Shown here: in pieces, positions 1-47,200 of the stretch
How positions within the stretch are numbered: the first letter of the stretch is position 1
Layout: each line of letters begins with the position of its first letter
DNA from: Blastocladiella emersonii ATCC 22665
Lineage: Eukaryota > Fungi > Blastocladiomycota
NCBI GenBank assembly: GCA_025594325.1
Contig: JANHCV010000012.1
Location: 1 to 64,000, forward strand
Reading direction: 5' to 3'
DNA: 64,000 nucleotides
The notes under the pieces: generated by a model
What the model was told of the DNA's origin: nothing
Database searches by the model: none
What the model saw: only the letters and a program-made list of their open reading frames with translations
Position numbers and translations under genes: made by a program

Positions 1-60
1 GTCTGGCGCTTTGGTTCCTTGCCCACCTGGACGTGAGGGTATACGAAGATTTGATTGAGT

Positions 61-1130
61 ATAGTTATGTTTGAGTACCATGACAATTATCAGCGTGGCG
101 GGATTGATACATCCCGCTTGTCGGAAATTTTGTTGGTTCAATACTGTGATTTATCGGCCCTTGCCCACCTGGACATGGGGCACTCGAAGATTTGAGTATG
201 GTTTCGTTTGAGTGCCATGACAATTATCTGCGTGGCTGGTTTACGACATTTCTTTGGTCAGATATTGTGTTGCTGTGATACTGTGATTTATGGGTCCCTG
301 GCTAGCTGGACAAGCGGGAAGTGAAAGATTTGAATATGGTTTTGTTTGAGTATCAAGACCATTACCTGCGTGGTCGGTTATGTAGACTCCTATGGTCAGA
401 TATTTTGTTGGTTTGATACTGTGATTTATGGGTCTCCAACCTGCTGGACATCTGGGAAGTCATAGATTTGAGTATGGTTTTGTTTGAGTACCATGACAAT
501 TATCTCCGCAGCTTGTTTACTATGTTTCCATGGTCAGTTTTATTGTTGCTTTGAATTTACGATTTATGGGTCCTGAACAAGCTGGACATGTGAATAGTCA
601 AAGACTTGACTATGGTTTTGTTTGAGTGCCATGACAATTACCTACGTGGCTTGTATACTCTATTTCCATGGTCAGATATTTGTTGGTTCGATATTACGAT
701 TTATGGGTCCTCAACCAGCTTGACATGCGGGAAAGCAAAGATTAGAATATGGTTTTGATTAAGTACCATGACAATCATCTGCGTGGCTGGTTTACTATAT
801 TTCCATGGTCAGATATTTTGTTGGTTCGATACTGTGATGTATGGGTCCCTGGCCAGCTGGACACACGGTAAAGCAAAGACTTGAAGATGGTTTTGTTTGA
901 GTACCATAACAATCATGTACGAGGTTGGTTTACTATCTTTCTGTTGTCAAATATTTAGTTGCCGTGATACTGTGATTTATGGGTCCCTGGCTAGCAGGAC
1001 AAGCGGGTAGTCAAAGATTTGAATATGGTTTTGTTCGACTACCATGACAATTGTCTCCGTGGCTGGTTTGGTACGTCCCTATCATTGGTAAATTCATTGC
1101 GTGCATATTGTGATTCGTGGAGGGTCAATG
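61..1130. repeat. Block of about 8 diverged AT-rich 137-138-bp monomers (shown for unit 1; present in every unit)
   Basis: The anchor ATGGTTTTGTTTGAGTACCATGACAAT or a variant recurs at 61, 198, 336, 474, 612, 749, 887 and 1025. TGGTCAGATATT, GATTTATGGGTC, CTGGAC and AAAGATTTGA blocks are shared. A partial monomer also lies at about 15-60. Confidence 0.95.
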
Positions 1131-1623
1131 TTGCTGCTACCTTGCCCGCATGCGCGCTGCGTCCGCCGACCCACCTAGGCCAGACAGGAAGGAAAGGGGA
1201 CCCCAAGAGCCCCACGACACCACTGTAGCTCCACTACCACCACAGCACCCACCAACACCACCTACAAACAAACACGACCCGCCAAGGCGCACGCAGCGAC
1301 ACCCGCAGCCATGCATGCCATGGCGTTGGTGGATGGTGGCCAACCAATCCTCATCACACACGACACGTATGAAGGTCTGCCTGCATCCACCCATCCATTC
1401 ATTCAACACACGCTCCCTCACGCACCCTTTCACTTGTGTTGCTTGACAGCCAGCTAGCCAGGTCCGGCTGCTGCTACCTATCCATTCTGCCTGCCTCCCA
1501 CGCCCGCCGCGTCCTGAGCCAGGCAGGGCTGTGCTGCGATACACGGCCGCGGCCAGTCCACGGTAATGGTACCCATGCAGTACGTTCCATGGCCGCCCGG
1601 CCACCCTAGCTTGGTGCTTGTGT

Positions 1624-1700
1624 GTCACCTTGGTCACCTTGGTCACCTTGGTCACCTTGGTCACCTTGGTCACTTGGTCACTTGGTCTCTTGGTCTCTTG
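1624..1700. repeat. 9-bp microsatellite (CCTTGGTCA)5 decaying into 8-bp CTTGGTCA/CTTGGTCT (in every unit)
   Basis: Read directly. It is the source of the spurious TKV, GHL and SPW peptide repeats in the ORF track. Confidence 0.95.
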
Positions 1701-2480
1701 GCGCTTGTGATGGAGGTCTATCTAACCCAGGCACGCACGGACACAGGCCCGCACGCCCACACGCACTCCCGCCAGGAGCATGTGGTGTGTGGGTCATCAT
1801 CCACCATTCAGTTTGTAGTCCCTAGCACCCCTTGGCCCCAGCACTGTCTCCTTCCTGCAGGAGGAGCCCTGCCGCCTCAGCCCTCCGCAGCCAGCCCTCT
1901 GCAGCCCAGTGAAGCAGTACGGCTGCTACGCTGTTTGCAAGGTACGGTGGCCAGGGCGACGCAGGTGCTGTGGTGTTGCTTGCCACTTGGCTGGCGACAG
2001 GGGCTGGCGCACCCATTGCAAGGCGTTCTGACGGACCCCGCGGCCATGAAAGCATGGGGGCAGCACTGGACACGAGTCTATCAATCAACGGCACTGGGAG
2101 GGCAGGCAGGCGCACCCGTTGGAGCGAGCCGACCTGGATGATAAATCATTGTTGAGTTGAGGACGCCTTGCATGCCTGCCGTTCATGCGAGCGTGTGTGA
2201 CACCAGGGTGGCCGTTTGCGCCGTGTGCGCACGGCGTGGAGCGCCAGGCGCTGTGCGCTGTGCGCGCTGCACGGTGCGTGGTGTACATCCGTCAGCGGGT
2301 GAGTGGTTTCACGCGGATAGACAGAGGAGCTGCTCGGAACCCTCGTTGGCCCATCATCATGCAGGGCTTGGAGTGGACAGCAGAGCTGGCAGCCTGGAGG
2401 AGACCAGTCGTATATTGACAAACCGAACCCCTCTCAGACTACATACGAGATAGATAATATCTACTGGGTGGGCGCTGTCA

Positions 2481-2529
2481 GTCAGGCTGTCAGTGTGGCA
2501 GGCTGCCAGGCTGCCAGGCTGCCAGGGCT
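2481..2529. repeat. 8-bp degenerate microsatellite (GCCAGGCT-like) (in every unit)
   Basis: gtcaggct gtcagtgt ggcaggct gccaggct gccaggct gccagggct. Confidence 0.85.
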
Positions 2530-2627
2530 CATCATTCATTCCTTTGTTGGCTGGGACGGCAACCAGAGAGCGCGGGCCCACAAAGACTTGCGAGGCGGTG
2601 TGGGTGTTCGGATAGCAGGTAGGCAAG

Positions 2628-2664
2628 TTGGCAGGTTGGCAGGTTGGCAGGCTGGCAGGTTGGC
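2628..2664. repeat. 8-bp microsatellite (TTGGCAGG)n (in every unit; expanded by 3 copies in unit 4 at about 10926-10986)
   Basis: Most units read ttggcagg x3, ctggcagg, ttggcc. Unit 4 has six consecutive ttggcagg, which explains the +24 bp offset of all later units. Confidence 0.93.
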
Positions 2665-5600
2665 CGTTTACTTAGTTGATTGGACCGTGTACTTTGACGA
2701 CGGGCTCCATACTTAGGGGATCGAAGAGTTGGCTAGTGGAGTGTGCACAAAGCGGTAGATTTGAATGTCTGGCGCTTTGGTTCCTTGCCCACCTGGACGT
2801 GAGGGTATACGAAGATTTGATTGAGTATAGTTATGTTTGAGTACCATGACAATTATCAGCGTGGCGGGATTGATACATCCCGCTTGTCGGAAATTTTGTT
2901 GGTTCAATACTGTGATTTATCGGCCCTTGCCCACCTGGACATGGGGCACTCGAAGATTTGAGTATGGTTTCGTTTGAGTGCCATGACAATTATCTGCGTG
3001 GCTGGTTTACGACATTTCTTTGGTCAGATATTGTGTTGCTGTGATACTGTGATTTATGGGTCCCTGGCTAGCTGGACAAGCGGGAAGTGAAAGATTTGAA
3101 TATGGTTTTGTTTGAGTATCAAGACCATTACCTGCGTGGTCGGTTATGTAGACTCCTATGGTCAGATATTTTGTTGGTTTGATACTGTGATTTATGGGTC
3201 TCCAACCTGCTGGACATCTGGGAAGTCATAGATTTGAGTATGGTTTTGTTTGAGTACCATGACAATTATCTCCGCAGCTTGTTTACTATGTTTCCATGGT
3301 CAGTTTTATTGTTGCTTTGAATTTACGATTTATGGGTCCTGAACAAGCTGGACATGTGAATAGTCAAAGACTTGACTATGGTTTTGTTTGAGTGCCATGA
3401 CAATTACCTACGTGGCTTGTATACTCTATTTCCATGGTCAGATATTTGTTGGTTCGATATTACGATTTATGGGTCCTCAACCAGCTTGACATGCGGGAAA
3501 GCAAAGATTAGAATATGGTTTTGATTAAGTACCATGACAATCATCTGCGTGGCTGGTTTACTATATTTCCATGGTCAGATATTTTGTTGGTTCGATACTG
3601 TGATGTATGGGTCCCTGGCCAGCTGGACACACGGTAAAGCAAAGACTTGAAGATGGTTTTGTTTGAGTACCATAACAGTCATGTACGAGGTTGGTTTACT
3701 ATCTTTCTGTTGTCAAATATTTAGTTGCCGTGATACTGTGATTTATGGGTCCCTGGCTAGCAGGACAAGCGGGTAGTCAAAGATTTGAATATGGTTTTGT
3801 TCGACTACCATGACAATTGTCTCCGTGGCTGGTTTGGTACGTCCCTATCATTGGTAAATTCATTGCGTGCATATTGTGATTCGTGGAGGGTCAATGTTGC
3901 TGCTACCTTGCCCGCATGCGCGCTGCGTCCGCCGACCCACCTAGGCCAGACAGGAAGGAAAGGGGACCCCAAGAGCCCCACGACACCACTGTAGCTCCAC
4001 TACCACCACAGCACCCACCAACACCACCTACAAACAAACACGACCCGCCAAGGCGCACGCAGCGACACCCGCAGCCATGCATGCCATGGCGTTGGTGGAT
4101 GGTGGCCAACCAATCCTCATCACACACGACACGTATGAAGGTCTGCCTGCATCCACCCATCCATTCATTCAACACACGCTCCCTCACGCACCCTTTCACT
4201 TGTGTTGCTTGACAGCCAGCTAGCCAGGTCCGGCTGCTGCTACCTATCCATTCTGCCTGCCTCCCACGCCCGCCGCGTCCTGAGCCAGGCAGGGCTGTGC
4301 TGCGATACACGGCCGCGGCCAGTCCACGGTAATGGTACCCATGCAGTACGTTCCATGGCCGCCCGGCCACCCTAGCTTGGTGCTTGTGTGTCCCCTTGGT
4401 CACCTTGGTCACCTTGGTCACCTTGGTCACCTTGGTCACTTGGTCACTTGGTCTCTTGGTCTCTTGGCGCTTGTGATGGAGGTCTATCTAACCCAGGCAC
4501 GCACGGACACAGGCCCGCACGCCCACACGCACTCCCGCCAGGAGCATGTGGTGTGTGGGTCATCATCCACCATTCAGTTTGTAGTCCCTAGCACCCCTTG
4601 GCCCCAGCACTGTCTCCTTCCTGCAGGAGGAGCCCTGCCGCCTCAGCCCTCCGCAGCCAGCCCTCTGCAGCCCAGTGAAGCAGTACGGCTGCTACGCTGT
4701 TTGCAAGGTACGGTGGCCAGGGCGACGCAGGTGCTGTGGTGTTGCTTGCCACTTGGCTGGCGACAGGGGCTGGCGCACCCATTGCAAGGCGTTCTGACGG
4801 ACCCCGCGGCCATGAAAGCATGGGGGCAGCACTGGACACGAGTCTATCAATCAACGGCACTGGGAGGGCAGGCAGGCGCACCCGTTGGAGCGAGCCGACC
4901 TGGATGATAAATCATTGTTGAGTTGAGGACGCCTTGCATGCCTGCCGTTCATGCGAGCGTGTGTGACACCAGGGTGGCCGTTTGCGCCGTGTGCGCACGG
5001 CGTGGAGCGCCAGGCGCTGTGCGCTGTGCGCGCTGCACGGTGCGTGGTGTACATCCGTCAGCGGGTGAGTGGTTTCACGCGGATAGACAGAGGAGCTGCT
5101 CGGAACCCTCGTTGGCCCATCATCATGCAGGGCTTGGAGTGGACAGCAGAGCTGGCAGCCTGGAGGAGACCAGTCGTATATTGACAAACCGAACCCCTCT
5201 CAGACTACATACGAGATAGATAATATCTACTGGGTGGGCGCTGTCAGTCAGGCTGTCAGTGTGGCAGGCTGCCAGGCTGCCAGGCTGCCAGGGCTCATCA
5301 TTCATTCCTTTGTTGGCTGGGACGGCAACCAGAGAGCGCGGGCCCACAAAGACTTGCGAGGCGGTGTGGGTGTTCGGATAGCAGGTAGGCAAGTTGGCAG
5401 GTTGGCAGGTTGGCAGGCTGGCAGGTTGGCCGTTTACTTAGTTGATTGGACCGTGTACTTTGACGACGGGCTCCATACTTAGGGGATCGAAGAGTTGGCT
5501 AGTGGAGTGTGCACAAAGCGGTAGATTTGAATATCTGGCGCTTTGGTTCCTTGCCCACCTGGACGTGAGGGTATACGAAGATTTGATTGAGTATAGTTAT

Positions 5601-8600
5601 GTTTGAGTACCATGACAATTATCAGCGTGGCGGGATTGATACATCCCGCTTGTCGGAAATTTTGTTGGTTCAATACTGTGATTTATCGGCCCTTGCCCAC
5701 CTGGACATGGGGCACTCGAAGATTTGAGTATGGTTTCGTTTGAGTGCCATGACAATTATCTGCGTGGCTGGTTTACGACATTTCTTTGGTCAGATATTGT
5801 GTTGCTGTGATACTGTGATTTATGGGTCCCTGGCTAGCTGGACAAGCGGGAAGTGAAAGATTTGAATATGGTTTTGTTTGAGTATCAAGACCATTACCTG
5901 CGTGGTCGGTTATGTAGACTCCTATGGTCAGATATTTTGTTGGTTTGATACTGTGATTTATGGGTCTCCAACCTGCTGGACATCTGGGAAGTCATAGATT
6001 TGAGTATGGTTTTGTTTGAGTACCATGACAATTATCTCCGCAGCTTGTTTACTATGTTTCCATGGTCAGTTTTATTGTTGCTTTGAATTTACGATTTATG
6101 GGTCCTGAACAAGCTGGACATGTGAATAGTCAAAGACTTGACTATGGTTTTGTTTGAGTGCCATGACAATTACCTACGTGGCTTGTATACTCTATTTCCA
6201 TGGTCAGATATTTGTTGGTTCGATATTACGATTTATGGGTCCTCAACCAGCTTGACATGCGGGAAAGCAAAGATTAGAATATGGTTTTGATTAAGTACCA
6301 TGACAATCATCTGCGTGGCTGGTTTACTATATTTCCATGGTCAGATATTTTGTTGGTTCGATACTGTGATGTATGGGTCCCTGGCCAGCTGGACACACGG
6401 TAAAGCAAAGACTTGAAGATGGTTTTGTTTGAGTACCATAACAATCATGTACGAGGTTGGTTTACTATCTTTCTGTTGTCAAATATTTAGTTGCCGTGAT
6501 ACTGTGATTTATGGGTCCCTGGCTAGCAGGACAAGCGGGTAGTCAAAGATTTGAATATGGTTTTGTTCGACTACCATGACAATTGTCTCCGTGGCTGGTT
6601 TGGTACGTCCCTATCATTGGTAAATTCATTGCGTGCATATTGTGATTCGTGGAGGGTCAATGTTGCTGCTACCTTGCCCGCATGCGCGCTGCGTCCGCCG
6701 ACCCACCTAGGCCAGACAGGAAGGAAAGGGGACCCCAAGAGCCCCACGACACCACTGTAGCTCCACTACCACCACAGCACCCACCAACACCACCTACAAA
6801 CAAACACGACCCGCCAAGGCGCACGCAGCGACACCCGCAGCCATGCATGCCATGGCGTTGGTGGATGGTGGCCAACCAATCCTCATCACACACGACACGT
6901 ATGAAGGTCTGCCTGCATCCACCCATCCATTCATTCAACACACGCTCCCTCACGCACCCTTTCACTTGTGTTGCTTGACAGCCAGCTAGCCAGGTCCGGC
7001 TGCTGCTACCTATCCATTCTGCCTGCCTCCCACGCCCGCCGCGTCCTGAGCCAGGCAGGGCTGTGCTGCGATACACGGCCGCGGCCAGTCCACGGTAATG
7101 GTACCCATGCAGTACGTTCCATGGCCGCCCGGCCACCCTAGCTTGGTGCTTGTGTGTCCCCTTGGTCACCTTGGTCACCTTGGTCACCTTGGTCACCTTG
7201 GTCACTTGGTCACTTGGTCTCTTGGTCTCTTGGCGCTTGTGATGGAGGTCTATCTAACCCAGGCACGCACGGACACAGGCCCGCACGCCCACACGCACTC
7301 CCGCCAGGAGCATGTGGTGTGTGGGTCATCATCCACCATTCAGTTTGTAGTCCCTAGCACCCCTTGGCCCCAGCACTGTCTCCTTCCTGCAGGAGGAGCC
7401 CTGCCGCCTCAGCCCTCCGCAGCCAGCCCTCTGCAGCCCAGTGAAGCAGTACGGCTGCTACGCTGTTTGCAAGGTACGGTGGCCAGGGCGACGCAGGTGC
7501 TGTGGTGTTGCTTGCCACTTGGCTGGCGACAGGGGCTGGCGCACCCATTGCAAGGCGTTCTGACGGACCCCGCGGCCATGAAAGCATGGGGGCAGCACTG
7601 GACACGAGTCTATCAATCAACGGCACTGGGAGGGCAGGCAGGCGCACCCGTTGGAGCGAGCCGACCTGGATGATAAATCATTGTTGAGTTGAGGACGCCT
7701 TGCATGCCTGCCGTTCATGCGAGCGTGTGTGACACCAGGGTGGCCGTTTGCGCCGTGTGCGCACGGCGTGGAGCGCCAGGCGCTGTGCGCTGTGCGCGCT
7801 GCACGGTGCGTGGTGTACATCCGTCAGCGGGTGAGTGGTTTCACGCGGATAGACAGAGGAGCTGCTCGGAACCCTCGTTGGCCCATCATCATGCAGGGCT
7901 TGGAGTGGACAGCAGAGCTGGCAGCCTGGAGGAGACCAGTCGTATATTGACAAACCGAACCCCTCTCAGACTACATACGAGATAGATAATATCTACTGGG
8001 TGGGCGCTGTCAGTCAGGCTGTCAGTGTGGCAGGCTGCCAGGCTGCCAGGCTGCCAGGGCTCATCATTCATTCCTTTGTTGGCTGGGACGGCAACCAGAG
8101 AGCGCGGGCCCACAAAGACTTGCGAGGCGGTGTGGGTGTTCGGATAGCAGGTAGGCAAGTTGGCAGGTTGGCAGGTTGGCAGGCTGGCAGGTTGGCCGTT
8201 TACTTAGTTGATTGGACCGTGTACTTTGACGACGGGCTCCATACTTAGGGGATCGAAGAGTTGGCTAGTGGAGTGTGCACAAAGCGGTAGATTTGAATAT
8301 CTGGCGCTTTGGTTCCTTGCCCACCTGGACGTGAGGGTATACGAAGATTTGATTGAGTATAGTTATGTTTGAGTACCATGACAATTATCAGCGTGGCGGG
8401 ATTGATACATCCCGCTTGTCGGAAATTTTGTTGGTTCAATACTGTGATTTATCGGCCCTTGCCCACCTGGACATGGGGCACTCGAAGATTTGAGTATGGT
8501 TTCGTTTGAGTGCCATGACAATTATCTGCGTGGCTGGTTTACGACATTTCTTTGGTCAGATATTGTGTTGCTGTGATACTGTGATTTATGGGTCCCTGGC

Positions 8601-11600
8601 TAGCTGGACAAGCGGGAAGTGAAAGATTTGAATATGGTTTTGTTTGAGTATCAAGACCATTACCTGCGTGGTCGGTTATGTAGACTCCTATGGTCAGATA
8701 TTTTGTTGGTTTGATACTGTGATTTATGGGTCTCCAACCTGCTGGACATCTGGGAAGTCATAGATTTGAGTATGGTTTTGTTTGAGTACCATGACAATTA
8801 TCTCCGCAGCTTGTTTACTATGTTTCCATGGTCAGTTTTATTGTTGCTTTGAATTTACGATTTATGGGTCCTGAACAAGCTGGACATGTGAATAGTCAAA
8901 GACTTGACTATGGTTTTGTTTGAGTGCCATGACAATTACCTACGTGGCTTGTATACTCTATTTCCATGGTCAGATATTTGTTGGTTCGATATTACGATTT
9001 ATGGGTCCTCAACCAGCTTGACATGCGGGAAAGCAAAGATTAGAATATGGTTTTGATTAAGTACCATGACAATCATCTGCGTGGCTGGTTTACTATATTT
9101 CCATGGTCAGATATTTTGTTGGTTCGATACTGTGATGTATGGGTCCCTGGCCAGCTGGACACACGGTAAAGCAAAGACTTGAAGATGGTTTTGTTTGAGT
9201 ACCATAACAATCATGTACGAGGTTGGTTTACTATCTTTCTGTTGTCAAATATTTAGTTGCCGTGATACTGTGATTTATGGGTCCCTGGCTAGCAGGACAA
9301 GCGGGTAGTCAAAGATTTGAATATGGTTTTGTTCGACTACCATGACAATTGTCTCCGTGGCTGGTTTGGTACGTCCCTATCATTGGTAAATTCATTGCGT
9401 GCATATTGTGATTCGTGGAGGGTCAATGTTGCTGCTACCTTGCCCGCATGCGCGCTGCGTCCGCCGACCCACCTAGGCCAGACAGGAAGGAAAGGGGACC
9501 CCAAGAGCCCCACGACACCACTGTAGCTCCACTACCACCACAGCACCCACCAACACCACCTACAAACAAACACGACCCGCCAAGGCGCACGCAGCGACAC
9601 CCGCAGCCATGCATGCCATGGCGTTGGTGGATGGTGGCCAACCAATCCTCATCACACACGACACGTATGAAGGTCTGCCTGCATCCACCCATCCATTCAT
9701 TCAACACACGCTCCCTCACGCACCCTTTCACTTGTGTTGCTTGACAGCCAGCTAGCCAGGTCCGGCTGCTGCTACCTATCCATTCTGCCTGCCTCCCACG
9801 CCCGCCGCGTCCTGAGCCAGGCAGGGCTGTGCTGCGATACACGGCCGCGGCCAGTCCACGGTAATGGTACCCATGCAGTACGTTCCATGGCCGCCCGGCC
9901 ACCCTAGCTTGGTGCTTGTGTGTCCCCTTGGTCACCTTGGTCACCTTGGTCACCTTGGTCACCTTGGTCACTTGGTCACTTGGTCTCTTGGTCTCTTGGC
10001 GCTTGTGATGGAGGTCTATCTAACCCAGGCACGCACGGACACAGGCCCGCACGCCCACACGCACTCCCGCCAGGAGCATGTGGTGTGTGGGTCATCATCC
10101 ACCATTCAGTTTGTAGTCCCTAGCACCCCTTGGCCCCAGCACTGTCTCCTTCCTGCAGGAGGAGCCCTGCCGCCTCAGCCCTCCGCAGCCAGCCCTCTGC
10201 AGCCCAGTGAAGCAGTACGGCTGCTACGCTGTTTGCAAGGTACGGTGGCCAGGGCGACGCAGGTGCTGTGGTGTTGCTTGCCACTTGGCTGGCGACAGGG
10301 GCTGGCGCACCCATTGCAAGGCGTTCTGACGGACCCCGCGGCCATGAAAGCATGGGGGCAGCACTGGACACGAGTCTATCAATCAACGGCACTGGGAGGG
10401 CAGGCAGGCGCACCCGTTGGAGCGAGCCGACCTGGATGATAAATCATTGTTGAGTTGAGGACGCCTTGCATGCCTGCCGTTCATGCGAGCGTGTGTGACA
10501 CCAGGGTGGCCGTTTGCGCCGTGTGCGCACGGCGTGGAGCGCCAGGCGCTGTGCGCTGTGCGCGCTGCACGGTGCGTGGTGTACATCCGTCAGCGGGTGA
10601 GTGGTTTCACGCGGATAGACAGAGGAGCTGCTCGGAACCCTCGTTGGCCCATCATCATGCAGGGCTTGGAGTGGACAGCAGAGCTGGCAGCCTGGAGGAG
10701 ACCAGTCGTATATTGACAAACCGAACCCCTCTCAGACTACATACGAGATAGATAATATCTACTGGGTGGGCGCTGTCAGTCAGGCTGTCAGTGTGGCAGG
10801 CTGCCAGGCTGCCAGGCTGCCAGGGCTCATCATTCATTCCTTTGTTGGCTGGGACGGCAACCAGAGAGCGCGGGCCCACAAAGACTTGCGAGGCGGTGTG
10901 GGTGTTCGGATAGCAGGTAGGCAAGTTGGCAGGTTGGCAGGTTGGCAGGTTGGCAGGTTGGCAGGTTGGCAGGCTGGCAGGTTGGCCGTTTACTTAGTTG
11001 ATTGGACCGTGTACTTTGACGACGGGCTCCATACTTAGGGGATCGAAGAGTTGGCTAGTGGAGTGTGCACAAAGCGGTAGATTTGAATATCTGGCGCTTT
11101 GGTTCCTTGCCCACCTGGACGTGAGGGTATACGAAGATTTGATTGAGTATAGTTATGTTTGAGTACCATGACAATTATCAGCGTGGCGGGATTGATACAT
11201 CCCGCTTGTCGGAAATTTTGTTGGTTCAATACTGTGATTTATCGGCCCTTGCCCACCTGGACATGGGGCACTCGAAGATTTGAGTATGGTTTCGTTTGAG
11301 TGCCATGACAATTATCTGCGTGGCTGGTTTACGACATTTCTTTGGTCAGATATTGTGTTGCTGTGATACTGTGATTTATGGGTCCCTGGCTAGCTGGACA
11401 AGCGGGAAGTGAAAGATTTGAATATGGTTTTGTTTGAGTATCAAGACCATTACCTGCGTGGTCGGTTATGTAGACTCCTATGGTCAGATATTTTGTTGGT
11501 TTGATACTGTGATTTATGGGTCTCCAACCTGCTGGACATCTGGGAAGTCATAGATTTGAGTATGGTTTTGTTTGAGTACCATGACAATTATCTCCGCAGC

Positions 11601-14600
11601 TTGTTTACTATGTTTCCATGGTCAGTTTTATTGTTGCTTTGAATTTACGATTTATGGGTCCTGAACAAGCTGGACATGTGAATAGTCAAAGACTTGACTA
11701 TGGTTTTGTTTGAGTGCCATGACAATTACCTACGTGGCTTGTATACTCTATTTCCATGGTCAGATATTTGTTGGTTCGATATTACGATTTATGGGTCCTC
11801 AACCAGCTTGACATGCGGGAAAGCAAAGATTAGAATATGGTTTTGATTAAGTACCATGACAATCATCTGCGTGGCTGGTTTACTATATTTCCATGGTCAG
11901 ATATTTTGTTGGTTCGATACTGTGATGTATGGGTCCCTGGCCAGCTGGACACACGGTAAAGCAAAGACTTGAAGATGGTTTTGTTTGAGTACCATAACAG
12001 TCATGTACGAGGTTGGTTTACTATCTTTCTGTTGTCAAATATTTAGTTGCCGTGATACTGTGATTTATGGGTCCCTGGCTAGCAGGACAAGCGGGTAGTC
12101 AAAGATTTGAATATGGTTTTGTTCGACTACCATGACAATTGTCTCCGTGGCTGGTTTGGTACGTCCCTATCATTGGTAAATTCATTGCGTGCATATTGTG
12201 ATTCGTGGAGGGTCAATGTTGCTGCTACCTTGCCCGCATGCGCGCTGCGTCCGCCGACCCACCTAGGCCAGACAGGAAGGAAAGGGGACCCCAAGAGCCC
12301 CACGACACCACTGTAGCTCCACTACCACCACAGCACCCACCAACACCACCTACAAACAAACACGACCCGCCAAGGCGCACGCAGCGACACCCGCAGCCAT
12401 GCATGCCATGGCGTTGGTGGATGGTGGCCAACCAATCCTCATCACACACGACACGTATGAAGGTCTGCCTGCATCCACCCATCCATTCATTCAACACACG
12501 CTCCCTCACGCACCCTTTCACTTGTGTTGCTTGACAGCCAGCTAGCCAGGTCCGGCTGCTGCTACCTATCCATTCTGCCTGCCTCCCACGCCCGCCGCGT
12601 CCTGAGCCAGGCAGGGCTGTGCTGCGATACACGGCCGCGGCCAGTCCACGGTAATGGTACCCATGCAGTACGTTCCATGGCCGCCCGGCCACCCTAGCTT
12701 GGTGCTTGTGTGTCCCCTTGGTCACCTTGGTCACCTTGGTCACCTTGGTCACCTTGGTCACTTGGTCACTTGGTCTCTTGGTCTCTTGGCGCTTGTGATG
12801 GAGGTCTATCTAACCCAGGCACGCACGGACACAGGCCCGCACGCCCACACGCACTCCCGCCAGGAGCATGTGGTGTGTGGGTCATCATCCACCATTCAGT
12901 TTGTAGTCCCTAGCACCCCTTGGCCCCAGCACTGTCTCCTTCCTGCAGGAGGAGCCCTGCCGCCTCAGCCCTCCGCAGCCAGCCCTCTGCAGCCCAGTGA
13001 AGCAGTACGGCTGCTACGCTGTTTGCAAGGTACGGTGGCCAGGGCGACGCAGGTGCTGTGGTGTTGCTTGCCACTTGGCTGGCGACAGGGGCTGGCGCAC
13101 CCATTGCAAGGCGTTCTGACGGACCCCGCGGCCATGAAAGCATGGGGGCAGCACTGGACACGAGTCTATCAATCAACGGCACTGGGAGGGCAGGCAGGCG
13201 CACCCGTTGGAGCGAGCCGACCTGGATGATAAATCATTGTTGAGTTGAGGACGCCTTGCATGCCTGCCGTTCATGCGAGCGTGTGTGACACCAGGGTGGC
13301 CGTTTGCGCCGTGTGCGCACGGCGTGGAGCGCCAGGCGCTGTGCGCTGTGCGCGCTGCACGGTGCGTGGTGTACATCCGTCAGCGGGTGAGTGGTTTCAC
13401 GCGGATAGACAGAGGAGCTGCTCGGAACCCTCGTTGGCCCATCATCATGCAGGGCTTGGAGTGGACAGCAGAGCTGGCAGCCTGGAGGAGACCAGTCGTA
13501 TATTGACAAACCGAACCCCTCTCAGACTACATACGAGATAGATAATATCTACTGGGTGGGCGCTGTCAGTCAGGCTGTCAGTGTGGCAGGCTGCCAGGCT
13601 GCCAGGCTGCCAGGGCTCATCATTCATTCCTTTGTTGGCTGGGACGGCAACCAGAGAGCGCGGGCCCACAAAGACTTGCGAGGCGGTGTGGGTGTTCGGA
13701 TAGCAGGTAGGCAAGTTGGCAGGTTGGCAGGTTGGCAGGCTGGCAGGTTGGCCGTTTACTTAGTTGATTGGACCGTGTACTTTGACGACGGGCTCCATAC
13801 TTAGGGGATCGAAGAGTTGGCTAGTGGAGTGTGCACAAAGCGGTAGATTTGAATATCTGGCGCTTTGGTTCCTTGCCCACCTGGACGTGAGGGTATACGA
13901 AGATTTGATTGAGTATAGTTATGTTTGAGTACCATGACAATTATCAGCGTGGCGGGATTGATACATCCCGCTTGTCGGAAATTTTGTTGGTTCAATACTG
14001 TGATTTATCGGCCCTTGCCCACCTGGACATGGGGCACTCGAAGATTTGAGTATGGTTTCGTTTGAGTGCCATGACAATTATCTGCGTGGCTGGTTTACGA
14101 CATTTCTTTGGTCAGATATTGTGTTGCTGTGATACTGTGATTTATGGGTCCCTGGCTAGCTGGACAAGCGGGAAGTGAAAGATTTGAATATGGTTTTGTT
14201 TGAGTATCAAGACCATTACCTGCGTGGTCGGTTATGTAGACTCCTATGGTCAGATATTTTGTTGGTTTGATACTGTGATTTATGGGTCTCCAACCTGCTG
14301 GACATCTGGGAAGTCATAGATTTGAGTATGGTTTTGTTTGAGTACCATGACAATTATCTCCGCAGCTTGTTTACTATGTTTCCATGGTCAGTTTTATTGT
14401 TGCTTTGAATTTACGATTTATGGGTCCTGAACAAGCTGGACATGTGAATAGTCAAAGACTTGACTATGGTTTTGTTTGAGTGCCATGACAATTACCTACG
14501 TGGCTTGTATACTCTATTTCCATGGTCAGATATTTGTTGGTTCGATATTACGATTTATGGGTCCTCAACCAGCTTGACATGCGGGAAAGCAAAGATTAGA

Positions 14601-38600: not shown

Positions 38601-40076
38601 GTAGGCAAGTTGGCAGGTTGGCAGGTTGGCAGGCTGGCAGGTTGGCCGTTTACTTAGTTGATTGGACCGTGTACTTTGACGACGGGCTCCATACTTAGGG
38701 GATCGAAGAGTTGGCTAGTGGAGTGTGCACAAAGCGGTAGATTTGAATATCTGGCGCTTTGGTTCCTTGCCCACCTGGACGTGAGGGTATACGAAGATTT
38801 GATTGAGTATAGTTATGTTTGAGTACCATGACAATTATCAGCGTGGCGGGATTGATACATCCCGCTTGTCGGAAATTTTGTTGGTTCAATACTGTGATTT
38901 ATCGGCCCTTGCCCACCTGGACATGGGGCACTCGAAGATTTGAGTATGGTTTCGTTTGAGTGCCATGACAATTATCTGCGTGGCTGGTTTACGACATTTC
39001 TTTGGTCAGATATTGTGTTGCTGTGATACTGTGATTTATGGGTCCCTGGCTAGCTGGACAAGCGGGAAGTGAAAGATTTGAATATGGTTTTGTTTGAGTA
39101 TCAAGACCATTACCTGCGTGGTCGGTTATGTAGACTCCTATGGTCAGATATTTTGTTGGTTTGATACTGTGATTTATGGGTCTCCAACCTGCTGGACATC
39201 TGGGAAGTCATAGATTTGAGTATGGTTTTGTTTGAGTACCATGACAATTATCTCCGCAGCTTGTTTACTATGTTTCCATGGTCAGTTTTATTGTTGCTTT
39301 GAATTTACGATTTATGGGTCCTGAACAAGCTGGACATGTGAATAGTCAAAGACTTGACTATGGTTTTGTTTGAGTGCCATGACAATTACCTACGTGGCTT
39401 GTATACTCTATTTCCATGGTCAGATATTTGTTGGTTCGATATTACGATTTATGGGTCCTCAACCAGCTTGACATGCGGGAAAGCAAAGATTAGAATATGG
39501 TTTTGATTAAGTACCATGACAATCATCTGCGTGGCTGGTTTACTATATTTCCATGGTCAGATATTTTGTTGGTTCGATTCTGTGATTTATGGGTCCCTGG
39601 CCAGCTGGACATACGGGAAAGCAAAGACTTGAAGATGGTTTTGTTTGAGTACCATAACAATTATGTACGAGCTTGGTTTACTATCTTCCTGTTGTCAAAT
39701 ATTTAGTTGCTGTGATACTGTGATATTTTTTTGGAACCTTTGATATATTCCTTAACAGCGGTTGTAACCTGCAAGCAGAGTATCCACTGTACGACAGGCG
39801 CCGGCCTTTTCTGGCAGAGCTGCAATGCAGCAAGGCCTGGACCACGCACGTCGAGGAGCAAAGGGGAAGAAGTGAGGGAGGGAGGGCAGATAGGACAAAC
39901 GGACGGAGCAAAGCAGACCAGTAGCGTCAAACGAGCAGTAGCGAGAGAGGGAGCGAATGAACAATAATCGAGACCGAGCAGGGCGACATGCTGGGCTGGC
40001 CAGCGAGAGAGCGAGGGCACGCCGGAAAGCCAGTAGCAGTACTGTGGCTTTGGCGGTGGCCCGAGAGGAATGTCAG

Positions 40077-40142
40077 TTTTTCTTTTTCTTCTCCTGTTTT
40101 GTCTTTTCTTTTCTTTTCTTTTTTTTTCGTTTCTTTTCTTTT
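40077..40142 (-). repeat. A-rich tract, (AAAAG)n-like on the element sense strand; candidate retrotransposon tail
   Basis: Plus strand reads tttttctttttcttctcctgttttgtcttttcttttcttttctttttttttcgtttcttttcttttg, about 60 nt downstream of the element stop at 40204. Confidence 0.7.
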
Positions 40143-40203
40143 GTGTCAATCCATGCACCGATGGGCATGATTCAGCGACGACCACGCGGTTCCTTCGGAC
40201 TTG

Positions 40204-42390
40204 TCACTTCAGGATGTGCCTTGGGGAGCCGAGCAGCCAAAGACGGACGGAGGGATCTGCAGCAAGAGCCGCCTGGGCCGCAGTTGTGGGCGGGCACACG
40301 GGCGGGTCTTGTTCACGCCCAGAGGGGTTGGGGGCGTGGGAGTGCATCGAGTGCAAGCACCGCGTGCAGTAGTGGTGTTTGTTGACGAACTTGAGGGTGG
40401 CCCTGTGTTGGCCAAAGGGATGTCGGACGCGTGCGCTCGCCTCGCGGGGCGGAGCGTCGGAAAAGTTGAGCGGGTCGACCTCGGCGCACCCAGCGGCGTG
40501 AGGGAGCCAGCCGAGTCGCCAGAGGGAGCGCGAGGCCACGGAGGTGATGGCCGCGAGGACGGGCCGGGTGAGGGCGCGGTCGAGTTGGAGGGCCCGCGAG
40601 CCGAACGATACGTCGCGGACGCGTAGAACGCAGCCGGCGAGGCGGGAGAGGGCGTCGGGGTCGCGCCAAATGGAGGCCGCGAGCCGGGCGCCAAAGTTGT
40701 GGAGGGCGTCGGTTGCGCCAGCAATGGACTCGCCGACCATGGTGTAGCCGGGCGTGCTGAGGTCCTCGCCTTGGACAGGAGAGAGAGGCGGTGGTGGTGC
40801 AGGTGGAGGTGGAGGTGGAGTGGGCGCATTCTGTGCTCGTGCAGTGGATGCGGCCGCGGCAGTAGCGGCGGCGGCGGCGGCGGCAACAGAGGCAGCGGTA
40901 CGGCGAGCATAGCGCTCAATGGACTTTTGAGCAGAGCCCAGCGCGGCGGACACGGCCGCGGCGTTACGGGTGCAGATCATCCAGTGACTTCCGTCGTCAA
41001 TGGCTACTTGGCACCTAGGACACACCGGTGAAGTGACTAGAGTAGGATGGTGGGCGTGCAGCAGTGAGAGAGTGGGTGTGATCCCAAGGAGGTGGCGAAC
41101 GCGATAGACGATGTCGCGGTTCGCAGCGCTGGAGGTGCGCTTATCGAGCGGGCGGGAGCCGGAGCCAATGGCCAGTGAGGTCGCAAGCATGTCAGGGTGC
41201 TCATCGGGGTCAGGGGAGGTGTGGAGGGAAGAGAGGAGGGCGGACTTGGAGCGCAGGGTCGCATCGCAGCGTGCAGTGGACAGGATCTTGAGGAATGCAG
41301 TGGAGGATGTGGGAACGGGGACGTCATCAAAATACAGCGCATGCTGAACATCTAACCGGATCTGTTTGGCGAAAGGGGGAGCGAGGACGAGCTCTTGGGC
41401 CAGATTGACCCCGTCAGCGGCGAGCCTGTCAGCGATCTCGTTCCCCTCAACGCCGGCGTGCCCGCGGACCCAGGAGACTGTGAAGGTCACACGGCGGGCA
41501 CGCGCGGCTGCCACTGCAAACGACCATGCGTCGATAGAACTGAGGGAAGGAGGAAAGCCAGAATCAGACGAGGAGGAGGAAAGGAACGATAGGACGCGGA
41601 TGGCCGATGCAATGGCAGCCTGGGAGTCACAGAAGATGTGGATGCGTGAGTGCTGTGGTGCCGGGGCGACCGCAAGCGCGATCGCCCACGCCTCGGCCCG
41701 CGTAGAAGAAGCTACGCCAGGCGAGACGCGCGCTGACAGACGGACGCCAAGCGTCGGGAACCACACGCCCGCTCCAAGGCGGGACGACCCAACCCCGTCC
41801 GCGGCTGGCACCATGGAGCCGTCCGTGAAGACTGGCACCAGCGCGGGATCGAGGTCGAGCGGGCCCGCCTGAGCCGGGACTTGCGTTACGCGGAGGCCAG
41901 AGGTGAAGGCGTCGCGGATGTTGATGGCTGGAGCTTGATGAACTGCTCGATCGTCGTGGCGGGGTCCTGGGTAGGGCTCACGCACGCATCGCATCGCGCG
42001 CGGGCCCCACTGTCGTTGAGCTTGAGTGTCGTTGACGTAAACTTGGAGGAGCTGAGCTGCGAGGTTGATGAAGCTTGTGCGATCCGGAACGTCCTTGCGA
42101 CCCTTGGTTGCTGGATTGTCGCGGCCAGAAAGCATGAGTTCTGCAAACCGAAAGTCGATGCCGTCTGAGAGTGAGCGGGACTCGATCAACTGCGACACGC
42201 GCGATATGAAGTAGCCGCGCATGGCTCGGCGGACAGTGAGCGGGAGCGCGCCCCACGGGACAAGCTGGCGGATCGGCAAGTCTGTGGCGGGGTTGCCGAT
42301 AGTATACTCGCCGCTAAGATCGGCAATCGAGAGGCGCCGGACGCTCATGAAAGTTCGAGCAAGCCGCCAAAGTAGCATGGACTCTCCGCA
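40204..42390 (-). pseudogene. C-terminal part of the element polyprotein: RNase H (about 41400-41840), zf-RVT-like CPRC...H...C knuckle, Ala/Pro-rich linker, terminal CTRC...H...C motif
   Basis: VFTDGS, STRAEAWAI, IFCDSQAAI and WVRGHAGVEGNEIADRLA carry all RNase H catalytic residues. VCPRCQVAIDDGSHWMIC and HYCTRCLHSMHSH...VC follow. This part is in a different frame from the RT; the switch is near EPTAES(P/M) at about 42380-42440. Confidence 0.85.
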
Positions 42391-44147
42391 GTCGGCTCGC
42401 TGGTTGGGACGGCAAGCGGCGAGAAAAGGACCTTGAGATACGTCTGCAAAGCTGAGAGCGAGCAGCGGACTGCCGTGCGGATCATGATATCGCAGTGGTT
42501 GAGAGAAGAGATGACCGCCTTCATGTGGTACCGGGTGACCTGCTCCTCGATGGACGCAAGCGCAAGAATCGCGGGATGGTGGAGCGCTGACGCGTGGAAG
42601 GCGCTCGCGACATGCAGCTTCTTGCGAATGAGAGCACGCGCGGACGCGTCCCACTTCTGCAAGCGGCGGAGCTTGGGCACAAAGTTGCGAGAGCGGTACA
42701 CCATGGCAGGCCAGACGACCGCGTTGATGACGTACACGGCCATCTTGGCCGTGATCTTCTTGTTTCGCAGCGAGAGCATCGCGCGCCCGAACGTCTCCTC
42801 CATCGCCTCTACGGCCGGGCCACCCGTGCCCGTCGCGTTGAGGAAGACGCCCAGGTAGCGAAACGCTCCATCGCTCGAAATCCTTGGCACCTCGACGTCG
42901 TTGGACTTGATCAGCGGCTCTCGTTTAGAGTTGATTGACAGCACGGCGCCCTTGGCGGCATTGGAGCGAATGCCGCAGGCCGCGTTGAACGAATCGACGC
43001 GTGCCACGGTGCGGCGGAGGCCGCCTGGCGTGCACGCGAAGAAGGCCGCATCGTCCACGAACGACAGGTTCTTGAGCTTGACGGGTGGGCGGTGCTTGGT
43101 GCCAGGGAAGAGTCGTCTCGGCGGGGTGTAACCAGGCCGAGCGTGCGCGGACTTGAAGGAACCGCGACCTGCATACGGGAGGAGAGGGAAAGCGTCATCT
43201 GCGCCTTTCGAAATATCGTTACAAAGGAGGGGATCGTAGAGACAGGACCACATTAGCGGGGACTCAACGGCGCCCTGGGGCACGACGCGGAGACACGGGA
43301 TCGGTTCGGTGAGCCCATACGCGGTGATCACACGCGATGTGCGACCCTCACGGAATTGCGTGCAGTACAACTCAATGAACGGCTCAGGCAGGCGGATGCG
43401 GCGCAGGGCCAGCCGCAGGATCGAGTGCGGGACCGTGTCGAACGCCTTGCTCTTGTCCTCAAAGTACACGTACATGGCCTTGTCCGAGTCCCGGGCGTGG
43501 TCAATGGCGGACGAGAGGAGCTGGATCGGGACGGCCGTATCTGTCCCGGGCAGAACAGAGTACTTTGCGCCGCGCAGCACGTCATGCTCAACGAGGACGT
43601 GCATCATGCGCGACACGAGGATCTTCATAAACCGCTTCGACGCGGTCTCCATGAGCGTGATGGGCCGCATCGCCGCAGCGGTGCCCGTGTACCCTGCGTC
43701 GGTCTTCGGGATCAGGTAGATGGAGCCCTCGCGCCACTGAGCGGGAGCGACGCCCGTGCGGAGAATGTCGTTGAAGAGCCTCAGCAGGTCGGCACGCGCG
43801 CGCGGGCCCGACTCGCGCAGGAAACGATACGTGATGCCAGACGGGCCGGGCGCCTTGTCAGGATGGACCGCCTTCAGTGCGGCGTCGAGCTCACCCGCCG
43901 AAATAGGGTCCATGAGCGAGCTCCATATGGCCGGGTCAACGTGGTCGAGCGGGGCAAACGCAGCAGCCCACTCCGCTGGAAGCGGCGGGAGGTCAACCCG
44001 GTCGAACCACCCCGCCACCTCCGCGGCCAACCGCCGCTTCACCTCGACGGGGTCCCAGACGGTCGGTTCGTCGTTCGTACCTTGATAGTAATCGATGGTG
44101 GCGTTGACGCGCTTGCGGCCCAGAATCGAGTTGAGCGCCGCGCGCAA
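42345..44147 (-). pseudogene. Reverse transcriptase domain of the non-LTR element (N-terminally truncated, no ATG, frameshifted at its 3' end)
   Basis: Motifs KAPGPSGITYRFL, WREGSIYLIPK, RPITLMET, EDKSKAFDTVPH, VPQGAVESPL, SFVDD and FRYLGVFL occur in canonical order. The track start is TTG and the frame is open further upstream. The usual G before xPQG is V. Confidence 0.85.
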
Positions 44148-44295
44148 GTCACTGTTGAAGAGGCCCTCGCGCCGCTCGCCTGGATCCGACTCTCCACCTT
44201 CTCATTTCAAGTTGGTCTGGAGGGTTTGTGAAACAATCAATCGCAATTTATGTGGTGGGGGCGAGCGAACCACGTGTGAGGATGACCAAGCTTGG

Positions 44296-47200
44296 TCACT
44301 TGCTCCCGCCAAAGAACATGCCAACAAGCTTCTTGATGCCCTTGGACTTCTTCTTCTTCTTGAACGGGAGGTCGAAGGGCGTCGTGTACTTCTGGCTCCA
44401 CAACACAGCCATATCCTGGTATTCGGCAATGAGCTCAGCCGTGCAGGTGAAGCGGCTGAAGTCCATGATCTTGCCAAACTTGTACGCGCAGTACTTCTTG
44501 TACGCGAGCGGGTCCAGAAGATGGCAGCGATGGGCGAGGAGAATGTCGATGGCAGGCACAAGGTTCTTGTAGCGCTCCGAGTCCTTGAGGGACGCCTTGC
44601 GCCGCTCCTCGAGCAGCTGCATGAACTTGGCGTAGCGATCGATGACCGTTTGGGCCGCAACGTTGTCAAACGCGACGCTGCCGTCGCCGCCCTCAACGTG
44701 GTCCGCAATGTCGCGCGACAGCTTTGCCCAGTTGTTCCGAGCGACGATGAGGTCGAGAGAAAGCGGCGTCATGACGTTCTGGTAGTACGAGAGGATCTTG
44801 CCAGTGACAATGTCCGCCTTGCGGCGGAGCTCCTTGGCCTTGCCCGAGTACTCCTTGTCCACGGCGGCCTGGACGTAGTCGTGGAGGATGGCGGCCAGAT
44901 CGAGCTCGGACCACGGGTTGACGACGTCGCGCTCGTTGAGGCGAGCCTCGAGGATCTCGGTCAGGGACTTCTCGTGCGTGAAGAAGAGCAGCTTGTGCAC
45001 CGAGTGCGCGAGCTTGTAGTCGATCTTGCCCTTGGCGAAGTTAAGGAGGGTACCAGCGACGTGGCCCTGGCCCTTCTCGGCCTTACGGAGGTCCTCCACA
45101 AGGCGCCACGCCGAGACGGTGGGCAGCGTGATCCACTTGTCGCACGACTCACAGAAGAGCATGCGGGAACCCGTACGCATCTCTGAGTAGAGCTCCGACT
45201 CCCAAGCCTGGTCGTGGTGGCAGAAGGGGCATGCCAGGGTCCAGGGCGCGGCGACCTGCTCCGCGTCAAGGACAAAGGCCTGACCACTGAACTGGGTCCA
45301 CGACTGGGCGTGGCTTGCGGGAACAAAGTCCTGCCAGGAAGCACCCGAAATCGTCGCGCCCGAGCTGGAAGCGGAGGCGCCAGTCGCTTGGAGGTACACG
45401 TCGACCTTGTCAAGCGGGAAGGCAAAGTGAAGAAGTTTGATGTCGCCGAAAACGCGCACGAGGTCCTCGGAATAGCGGTGCGAGTCCATGATATGGACGA
45501 GCCACATCATAAGCACGTCGAGCGGCGGTAGGGGGAGAGCGTGACCTTCGACGAGCGTGTGTTCCATGAGCGAGAGGTACTGGACGTAGCGCTGCTCCGC
45601 GCGTGCCCAGTAAGCAGCCTCAACCTTTTCGTCATCGAAGCGGAAGTCGGGGCTGTTGAGCAGCACGAGGCACACGCGGTGGAAGAGGACCAGCAGCTCG
45701 GGCTTCATCGTGAACTCGGGGACGGGCTCGACAACCGACGCGGTAGTCGAGCCGCCCAGAGTACCAATCGAGAGTGCACGCGATCTCGGCGAGCCCTGCG
45801 GGCGGAGGAGCACACCGGGCGCCGCATCTTCGGCCGGGACCGGGGGCATGGGGATGCTGGCGACGCCCGTGAGCGATGTACGCTTGGAAACGGGGACAGG
45901 CAGGGCCGGCAGAGGCTCCTCCGACTTGAGCAGCATCAGCGACTGGCCAAAGCGCTGGATCGTCATTGTGCGGTACGCGCCGGGGAACAGGAGGTGCGTG
46001 GCATGGGCGACGTACACCGCTGCGTTGACATCCACCAGCGAGTACATCTCGAAGCTCGAGTCGGTGAAGACCTGGACCGAGAGGCGAGCAAACTGCTGGT
46101 AGAGCGAAGCCGCGGCAGAAGCGTCGAGTTTGCTGGACTCGTTGAGGAACTTGTGCATGCGCGAGCGCCACACGGGGACCTGCGACACGAAATTGATGGA
46201 GAAGGGAGCCAGGCCCCGGTTGATGACGCGAAGCGCCGCCAGGTCGCTCGACTCGGAACAGGTCGGGCAGACGTGCGCCGCTTCGGCGTTGGTCTTGAGA
46301 TCGACGAGGGCTTCCTGCGACACCGAGTGGATGGTGGCACAAGCAGGGCACGACACGAGATACGCGGTGGCGGCCTTGGCGTGGTGGTACAAGTAGGGCT
46401 CGCCGGAGTATGCCTCCCACACCGCCTCGCTCTCCGAGTCAATCTCCTGCTGGAACTTGACCACCTCGCTATGGAGGATTGTGTGGTCGAGGATAGCCTG
46501 GGCGCCGTCATCGCCAAAGAGTAAAACGAGGTCGCTGAGCATGGACTCGTGGTACTGCGCATGGACGTGAATGAGAAGCGCAACGTCGACTGGTGGGATA
46601 AGCGTGGATCGCTTGGTCTCCGCGATCATCGTGAGCCACTTCAGGTAGCGGGACTCGGACCGGACAATGAGAGCGGGGTAATGCGAGGTCTCAATCTGCA
46701 GGAGAACGCGAAGCAGTCGCCAGTGGCGCTCGATCATGGAGCCGGTCACGTCGGCCGCGAGCAGGGGAGCGACGGACGACTTGGAGGCGCCGAGCTCCAC
46801 GCCAGCGGTGTTGCTCACCTGCGTCAGGTCAAGGACGGACCCGGCAGCGAGTGCGGTCGGATCGAGCGAGATGGAGCGGTCGCCGGTGGTGGGCGCGAGG
46901 ACCGAGGCACTGGAAGGCGTTGTCGGGCGGGACGGGAGCATGAGCTCACGCGACAGCGACGGAACGCGCGGCGAAGGCGCCGCCGAGAGGACCGGGGACG
47001 GGAGCGGGGTAGCAGCCACAGACACTGGGCGGCTGTATGCGGCGGCCGCTTTCCCAGCGAGGCGCGGAGCAAAGTAGCTCATCTTGGTACCGAACAGGGC
47101 CCACATGTGCGAGCTGAAGGTCGTCGCGAACTGCGTGTGCACCAAATGGCCGACGAGCACCTCAGGCGTGCTGGGCTGGACCGAGTAGAGGTAAAGCGAG

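Follow-up and report, generated by a model that had tools for sequence, protein, structure and literature searches.

Seven internal macrosatellite arrays, edged by LINE copies, as candidate centromeres of the fungus Blastocladiella emersonii

The DNA analysed here (the window) comprises the first 64,000 nucleotides of contig C4 of Blastocladiella emersonii (C4:1-64,000). It opens at base 1 of the contig with a macrosatellite array, which is joined through a copy of a long interspersed nuclear element (LINE) to unique, gene-bearing DNA. Our analysis suggests that this array is a broken part of one of seven internal arrays in the genome, and that these seven are the best candidates for regional centromeres or the immediately surrounding heterochromatin, a reading to which we assign a probability of roughly 0.6. 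The arrays are placed in that position because they are internal, because each has its own variant of the repeat unit, because LINE copies gather at their edges with a characteristic orientation, and because they are non-coding and depleted in CpG. The internal position, the pairing of array ends, the seven variants and the enrichment and orientation bias of the LINE copies are observations; the centromeric role is what we propose from them.

Results

Within the window the array occupies positions 1-39,724 on the forward strand and is built of 2766-bp units in head-to-tail order, 14.4 in number and 99.9% alike, one of which measures 2790 bp; this bears out a preliminary description of this DNA as at least 39.7 kb of near-identical 2766-bp repeats. 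The 2766-bp period dominates the first 40 kb, with an autocorrelation of 0.94 at that lag, and an anchor 40-mer occurs 14 times at a spacing of 2766 bp with a single exception of 2790 bp. Between interior units there are 0-3 differing positions, to which the unit at 10,299-13,088 adds a microsatellite expansion of 24 bp. The reference unit (2001-4766, forward strand; GC 0.53, observed/expected CpG 0.66) combines about 1 kb of 138-bp monomers with about 1.75 kb of GC-rich non-monomer DNA. Its monomers form a sub-array at 2821-3835 on the forward strand (7.4 copies, about 77% alike, GC 0.41), and the last monomers of the window array, at 38,803-39,724 on the same strand, are diverged. In short-read contigs the monomers have a word depth thousands of times higher than the unique flank, a figure that is not to be read as a copy number.

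Two 17-mers of the unit are identical in all seven array variants of the genome: CGTGGCTGGTTTGGTAC, found once per unit (3824-3840, forward strand), and GCAGGCGCACCCGTTGG (2106-2122 of the window). Both could be binding boxes; beyond them, the conservation profile of the seven variants contains no clear functional box. The once-per-unit CGTGGCTGGTTTGGTAC served as the marker for a genome-wide census of arrays, and its 307 genomic matches all fall at 12 contig ends, with none outside arrays and none in C1, C3, C8, C12-16 or C18. Where the preliminary description had considered a single interstitial locus as a possible refutation, the genome contains seven arrays, whose units measure 2.5-4.2 kb and combine 138-bp monomers with a conserved GC-rich part. 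The array ends hold 18 units of 3124 bp on C2, 14 of 2766 bp on C4 (the window), 66 of 3124/3148 bp on C5, 12 of about 2560 bp on C6, 29 of 2766/2790 bp (about 80 kb) on C7, 88 of 2.2-4.0 kb on C9, 17 of about 3330 bp on C10, 9 of 3328 bp on C11, 35 of about 4150 bp on C17, 12 of 2635/3049 bp on C19, 3 of 3049 bp on C20 and 4 on C21, and C16 starts with a satellite stub of 0.36 kb. The longest assembled array is array G on C9 (C9:164,861-443,654), at about 280 kb, which differs from the others in being heterogeneous.

When the array ends were compared all against all, six pairs emerged: C4 with C7, whose units have the same orientation as those of the window (99.9% identity, strand relation +), C2 with C5 (99.1%, +), C21 with C6 (100%, -), C20 with C19 (99.8%, +), C11 with C10 (99.9%, -) and C16 with C9 (95.5%, +), the remaining comparisons giving at most 95.3%. 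Identity is 99-100% within an array and 76-95% between arrays. The strand relation in all six pairs fits an end-to-end join into one head-to-tail array, and the chance probability of six correct orientations is 1/64. We infer that positions 1-39,724 of the window would form the right-hand part of an array of at least 120 kb, array A, the left-hand part of which lies on C7.

The preliminary description had offered two placements for this DNA, a chromosome-end domain and a centromere boundary. The first is rejected because the window array appears to be one broken side of an internal array that continues on C7, because canonical (TTTAGG)n telomeres have subtelomeric families of their own, because a telomerase gene is present, and because arrays lie in mid-chromosome in three chromosome models. 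Telomeres are made of the hexamer TTTAGG and variants of it, read as CCTAAA on the forward strand; a TTAGGG telomere was considered and is absent from the assembly. (CCTAAA)n stands at two contig ends only, C2-5' (C2:1-888, L015) and C11-5' (C11:1-92, L023), and both contigs carry a satellite array at the opposite end. No telomere repeat was found beside any array, that of the window at the end of C4 included. The telomerase RBD gene is at C18:1,092,687; the preliminary description had asked for a search for TERT, and this gene counts against the chromosome-end placement.

Thirteen contig ends are of terminal type and carry one of three repeat families, each in a single outward orientation. 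Family Y marks six of them (C2-5', C21-5', C5-3', C19-3', C3-3' and C6-5'; loci L033, L037, L036, L051 and L018) and abuts the C2 telomere with its telomere side outward. Family Z marks three (C11-5', C18-3' and C8-3'; L023, L050 and L040) and abuts the C11 telomere, and family X, also in one outward orientation, marks four (C4-3', C15-3', C16-3' and C20-5'; L039, L047, L048 and L032). This uniformity serves as a control, since the macrosatellite ends, in contrast, come in pairs of opposite orientation. Ribosomal DNA was considered for the X, Y and Z ends, which gave no rRNA match. Three chromosome models follow from these ends and the array pairs, namely Y-C2-array-C5-Y, with the array 1.68 and 1.17 Mb from the ends, Y-C21-array-C6-Y (1.73 and 1.22 Mb) and X-C20-array-C19-Y (1.79 and 1.98 Mb), and in all three the mid-chromosome array is bounded on both sides by subtelomere-type families. 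Because there are 13 terminal-type ends, a chromosome number of about seven is implied, which equals the number of arrays, and the data are consistent with one array per chromosome. In the genome paper the telomere motif is given as AAACCT, 12 telomeric ends were counted in the assembly graph, the chromosomes are put at no fewer than 6, and centromeres are not addressed (PMC9730499). A CENP-C gene is present at C16:633,010. Breaks at (CAG)n at C10-5', in C13 and at C18-5' suggest further contig joins. In both C12 and C13 the first 3 kb are the exact reverse complement of the last 3 kb (L024/L044 and L025/L045), so that each would be either a whole-contig palindrome or an assembly artefact.

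The satellite arrays are non-coding. A search of the unit against Rfam (gathering score; E<=1) gave no family match, the sole hit being a chance small nucleolar RNA match that scored 24 bits where the cut-off is 100, and an RNA gene was discarded; a tRNA search of the unit likewise found none. The open reading frames (ORFs) of the unit are without a Pfam match and are interrupted by stops in other array variants, which removes a protein gene from consideration. Observed/expected CpG is 0.66 in the array, whereas the LINE copy and the arm reach 1.15-1.19 (arm, 1.19), and TpG and CpA are in excess in the array, a deamination-like signature confined to it that would fit long-term cytosine methylation. 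The monomers contain 9.9 TTTT per kb on the forward strand, about ten times the density of the arm, and no AAAA, so that T-runs are restricted to that strand.

The LINE copy next to the array (39,727-44,202, reverse strand) is 5'-truncated and frameshifted and encodes a reverse transcriptase (RT) and an RNase H without an endonuclease domain. On the reverse strand it comprises a 3' untranslated region (39,727-40,203), an RNase H ORF (40,204-42,654; Pfam PF00075) and an RT ORF (42,345-44,147; Pfam PF00078, 1.8e-14), and the best solved-structure matches of the RT are R2 and L1 ORF2p (1e-16). No long terminal repeats (LTRs) or flanking direct repeats were found around the element. Its matches to other genomic copies cease at 44,200-44,202. 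As had been described, its 3' end points at the array, the A-tail abutting the satellite. Because the endonuclease domain is absent and the RT and RNase H lie in different reading frames, the window copy is a dead insertion, and the description of array and element as a working system is unsupported for this truncated, frameshifted copy.

Genomic copies of the element measure 0.3-4.5 kb and have a common 3' end (query base 124-127) and variable 5' truncation, and an AP-endonuclease (APE) domain (PF03372) lies directly upstream of long copies at C11:2,228,172, C21:508,596 and C9:162,613. Because of these features and the type of RT, we assign the family to the APE-type LINEs (non-LTR retrotransposons). 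The window element is a dead copy of this family, which accumulates at array edges. Two long copies (C11:~2,227,000-2,233,970 and C21:503,403-509,147) belong to a subfamily that shares about 83% identity with the window copy, have open frames of 2360 aa (C11) and 1666 aa (C21) that include the APE domain, and may still be active.

Outside the array units, 21 LINE 3' ends were mapped, and 15 of these are no more than 10 kb from the edge of an array, in zones that make up about 0.4% of the genome; the association of element and array that the preliminary description proposed to look for elsewhere is thus found. Thirteen of the 15 face the array (C4, C19, C5, C16, C21, C11, two on C20, C17, two on C7, C10 and C9), and those on C2 and C6 face away. 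In arrays E (C10/C11) and F (C17) every unit contains a 5'-truncated LINE 3' fragment. A T-run is present at every LINE junction that was read, and the junction sites differ between copies.

At the window junction (39,719-39,732, reverse strand) a short A-tail, seen as a T-run on the forward strand at 39,726/39,727, is joined to a monomer at a TGATTT/A-like site, and the LINE copies of C16, C17 and C10/C11 have the same A-tail. The copy has no target-site duplication, its 3' flank being satellite and its 5' flank unique DNA without satellite, which fits either insertion with deletion of the target or a later rearrangement. No sequence homology was found between the window unit and the LINE. 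The 5' junction between LINE and gene (44,149-44,700) is bridged by short-read contigs of a single study, from four of its runs, and none of the listed short-read contigs of that study bridges the 3' junction between satellite and LINE. On C16, the LINE adjoins a satellite stub of 82 bp that has the orientation of a right-hand edge, and this stub joins the main array through an inversion junction with an overlap of about 9 bp. For the inverted stub we favour an origin by inversion or template switch; 3' transduction was rejected on the ground that the outer end has no A/T tail and that the junction has this overlap.

No satellite sequence was found at 39,727-64,000, and the preliminary description was right that the array does not resume on the far side of the element and that the last unique gene follows immediately. 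That gene (44,296-55,362, reverse strand) is an intron-free ORF of 3688 aa with repeated GRDP-like (PF07173) modules; it ends at 44,296, about 94 bp from the LINE, and lies directly upstream of it on the same strand. A second copy of its 3' end (44,203-45,707, reverse strand) is found on the opposite flank of array A, where C7:981,877-983,377 carries the last 1.5 kb of the gene, inverted, 99% identical and fused to a LINE copy. Either an inverted duplication or the retrocopying of a read-through transcript may have produced the fusion. The whole flank (C7:981,877-988,441) is complex: the inverted gene fragment is followed by a LINE with an apparent internal deletion corresponding to window positions 40,043-41,027, the same as in C9:159,038-161,033, and then by a second, diverged and 5'-truncated LINE, 225 bases and the first monomer. 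Near the 5' end of C7 there is also a U4 small nuclear RNA gene (RF00015, 71.6 bits; L019:1525-1679).

Discussion

The placement of the window array at a centromere boundary, as the preliminary description also suggested, fits all of the positional evidence, namely the seven variant-specific arrays, the LINE at nearly every edge and the mid-chromosome position, and on this evidence it stands as the best supported candidate. We put at about even the chance that B. emersonii has true satellite centromeres in the form of seven arrays, hundreds of kb long, that each have higher-order units of their own based on the 138-bp monomer and LINEs pointing inward from both sides.

The orientation of the edge LINEs could be explained by the manner of their insertion. 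The LINE endonuclease would nick T-runs, which in a genome of 64% GC gather in the AT-rich monomers, and there on a single strand, and target-primed reverse transcription would start from the satellite. If the 5' end of the new copy were then captured in the arm and the intervening DNA lost, the outcome would be a LINE whose 3' end faces the array and which has no target-site duplication. At left-hand edges a local inversion or an inverted duplication would produce the mirror image, as seen at C16 and C7.

Several points weigh against these proposals. The centromere assignment draws on position and composition. The join of C7 to C4 and the other contig joins are inferred, and among the short-read contigs examined none spans them. 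Array F on C17 has no partner end, and about 11.9 Mb of the genome (C1, C3, C8, C15, C18 and small contigs) are not tied to any array. As for the mechanism, the minus strand of the monomers has no T-runs, so that target-primed reverse transcription accounts for right-hand edges but not, on its own, for left-hand ones, and an inverted stub was seen directly at one edge only, that of C16. An inverted duplication of arm DNA was considered as a general feature of the arrays and rejected; it is found at C7/C4, but on C16 the 694 bp that lie beyond the LINE are unique.

Because the evidence is of this kind, it would also accommodate knob-like heterochromatic macrosatellites, internal and present once on most chromosomes, with the functional centromeres formed by other sequences, either close by or somewhere else. 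In favour of this, a 2020 review of fungal genome architecture describes fungal centromeres as point, short regional, AT-rich or transposon-rich and includes no satellite type, the word satellite being absent from its account of them (PMC7385547). The boundary LINE also has genes less than 100 bp away, so that a broad pericentromere poor in genes is lacking. Set against it are the match of seven arrays to about seven inferred chromosomes, the lack of any contig with two arrays and the near-middle position, together with the array-specific variants, homogenisation within arrays and edge LINEs that are the usual signature of animal and plant centromeres. We consider knobs an unlikely alternative to the centromeric reading.

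The LINE pattern would allow another explanation, in which satellite and LINE are interdependent and the LINE RT or read-through transcripts seed, extend or delimit the arrays. The predominance of array-facing 3' ends would be expected under this explanation, as would the head-to-tail LINE pairs at C7 and C20, the LINE 3' fragments fixed in every unit of arrays E and F, the chimera of gene 3' end and LINE on the opposite flank of array A, and the apparently intact LINE at C11 with its frame of 2360 aa. However, the window unit and the LINE have no sequence in common, the junction sites vary between copies, and most mapped boundary LINEs are truncated, the window copy being frameshifted as well. 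A target-site bias with retention at array edges accounts for most of the pattern, and interdependence seems to us improbable.

A still smaller probability attaches to terminal arrays, that is, subtelomeric satellites or telocentric chromosomes in which the centromeric satellite adjoins a telomere missed by the assembly. All arrays do reach a contig end, only two telomeres were assembled, and the 13 array ends equal the 13 other terminal-type ends in number. However, array ends come in near-identical pairs with opposite outward orientations, whereas the subtelomere families have a single orientation; telomere repeats adjoin no array; and about 13 chromosomes with 26 telomeres would be needed, as against 12 telomeres in the assembly graph (PMC9730499). 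Least credible of all is an assembly artefact at the array-LINE-gene junction or in the array itself: the array does lie at a contig end, its 3' junction is unbridged by the listed read-derived contigs, and the assembly contains the palindromic C12 and C13, but 12 more contig ends have the satellite-LINE architecture, with junctions that differ, the 5' junction is bridged by independent short-read contigs, in which the monomers reach a very high word depth, and the 6.5-kb boundary structures are shorter than the mean HiFi read of 10.5 kb (PMC9730499).

If the centromeric reading is correct, the closest likeness is to primate alpha-satellite higher-order repeats and plant CEN180-type arrays. 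These share with the B. emersonii arrays homogenised, array-specific multi-kb units of nucleosome-sized monomers (138 bp here), diverged edge monomers, retroelements at or near the edges, and an internal position; in B. emersonii, too, there may be a single array on each chromosome. Variants of alpha-satellite are chromosome-specific, and those of B. emersonii are array-specific and presumed to be chromosome-specific. The differences are that the B. emersonii unit is a composite in which monomers alternate with a longer stretch of conserved GC-rich DNA, that its arrays measure at least 40-280 kb as assembled and belong to a fungus, that genes start less than 100 bp from the boundary element, and that these are candidate centromeres by sequence.

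Among fungi, Mucor circinelloides has mosaic centromeres with pericentric Grem-LINE1 elements (10.1101/706580). Like B. emersonii it is an early-diverging fungus in which APE-type LINEs are largely confined to the surroundings of the (candidate) centromeres and scaffolds break there, but its centromeres consist of a short AT-rich core and a motif, satellite arrays are absent, and the species is without CENP-A (10.1101/706580). B. emersonii, by contrast, has long satellite arrays and a CENP-C gene. In Schizosaccharomyces pombe and Candida tropicalis the centromere is also a centre flanked by mutually inverted repeats. The inverted flanks of B. emersonii are LINE copies and, at array A, also 1.5 kb of arm DNA at 99% identity; its centre is tandem satellite rather than a unique core, and its inverted repeats are retroelement copies of unequal length rather than homogenised arms. 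The HeT-A/TART elements of Drosophila and MoTeR of Magnaporthe resemble the edge LINEs in that non-LTR 3' ends are joined to a repeat block, with occasional head-to-tail pairs. They differ, as do the Chironomus satellites, in that the B. emersonii structures are internal in a genome with (TTTAGG)n telomeres and a telomerase gene, and the B. emersonii elements are truncated single copies and, unlike HeT-A/TART and MoTeR, form no long terminal arrays.

To our knowledge, centromere maps exist for very few early-diverging fungi, and we found no report in the literature on centromeres of the Blastocladiomycota. The contig-end pairing, combined with the X, Y and Z ends, provides a scaffold of about seven chromosomes for the assembly. 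B. emersonii, which is in development as a model organism, would gain array-specific probes for chromatin immunoprecipitation or fluorescence in situ hybridisation. If the centromeric reading is true, B. emersonii would provide the fungal kingdom with its first satellite-type centromere, which would suggest that satellite centromeres are older than the split between fungi and animals and disappeared from those fungi that have been studied better. Should the arrays bind the kinetochore, the picture of centromere evolution in opisthokonts would have to be revised.

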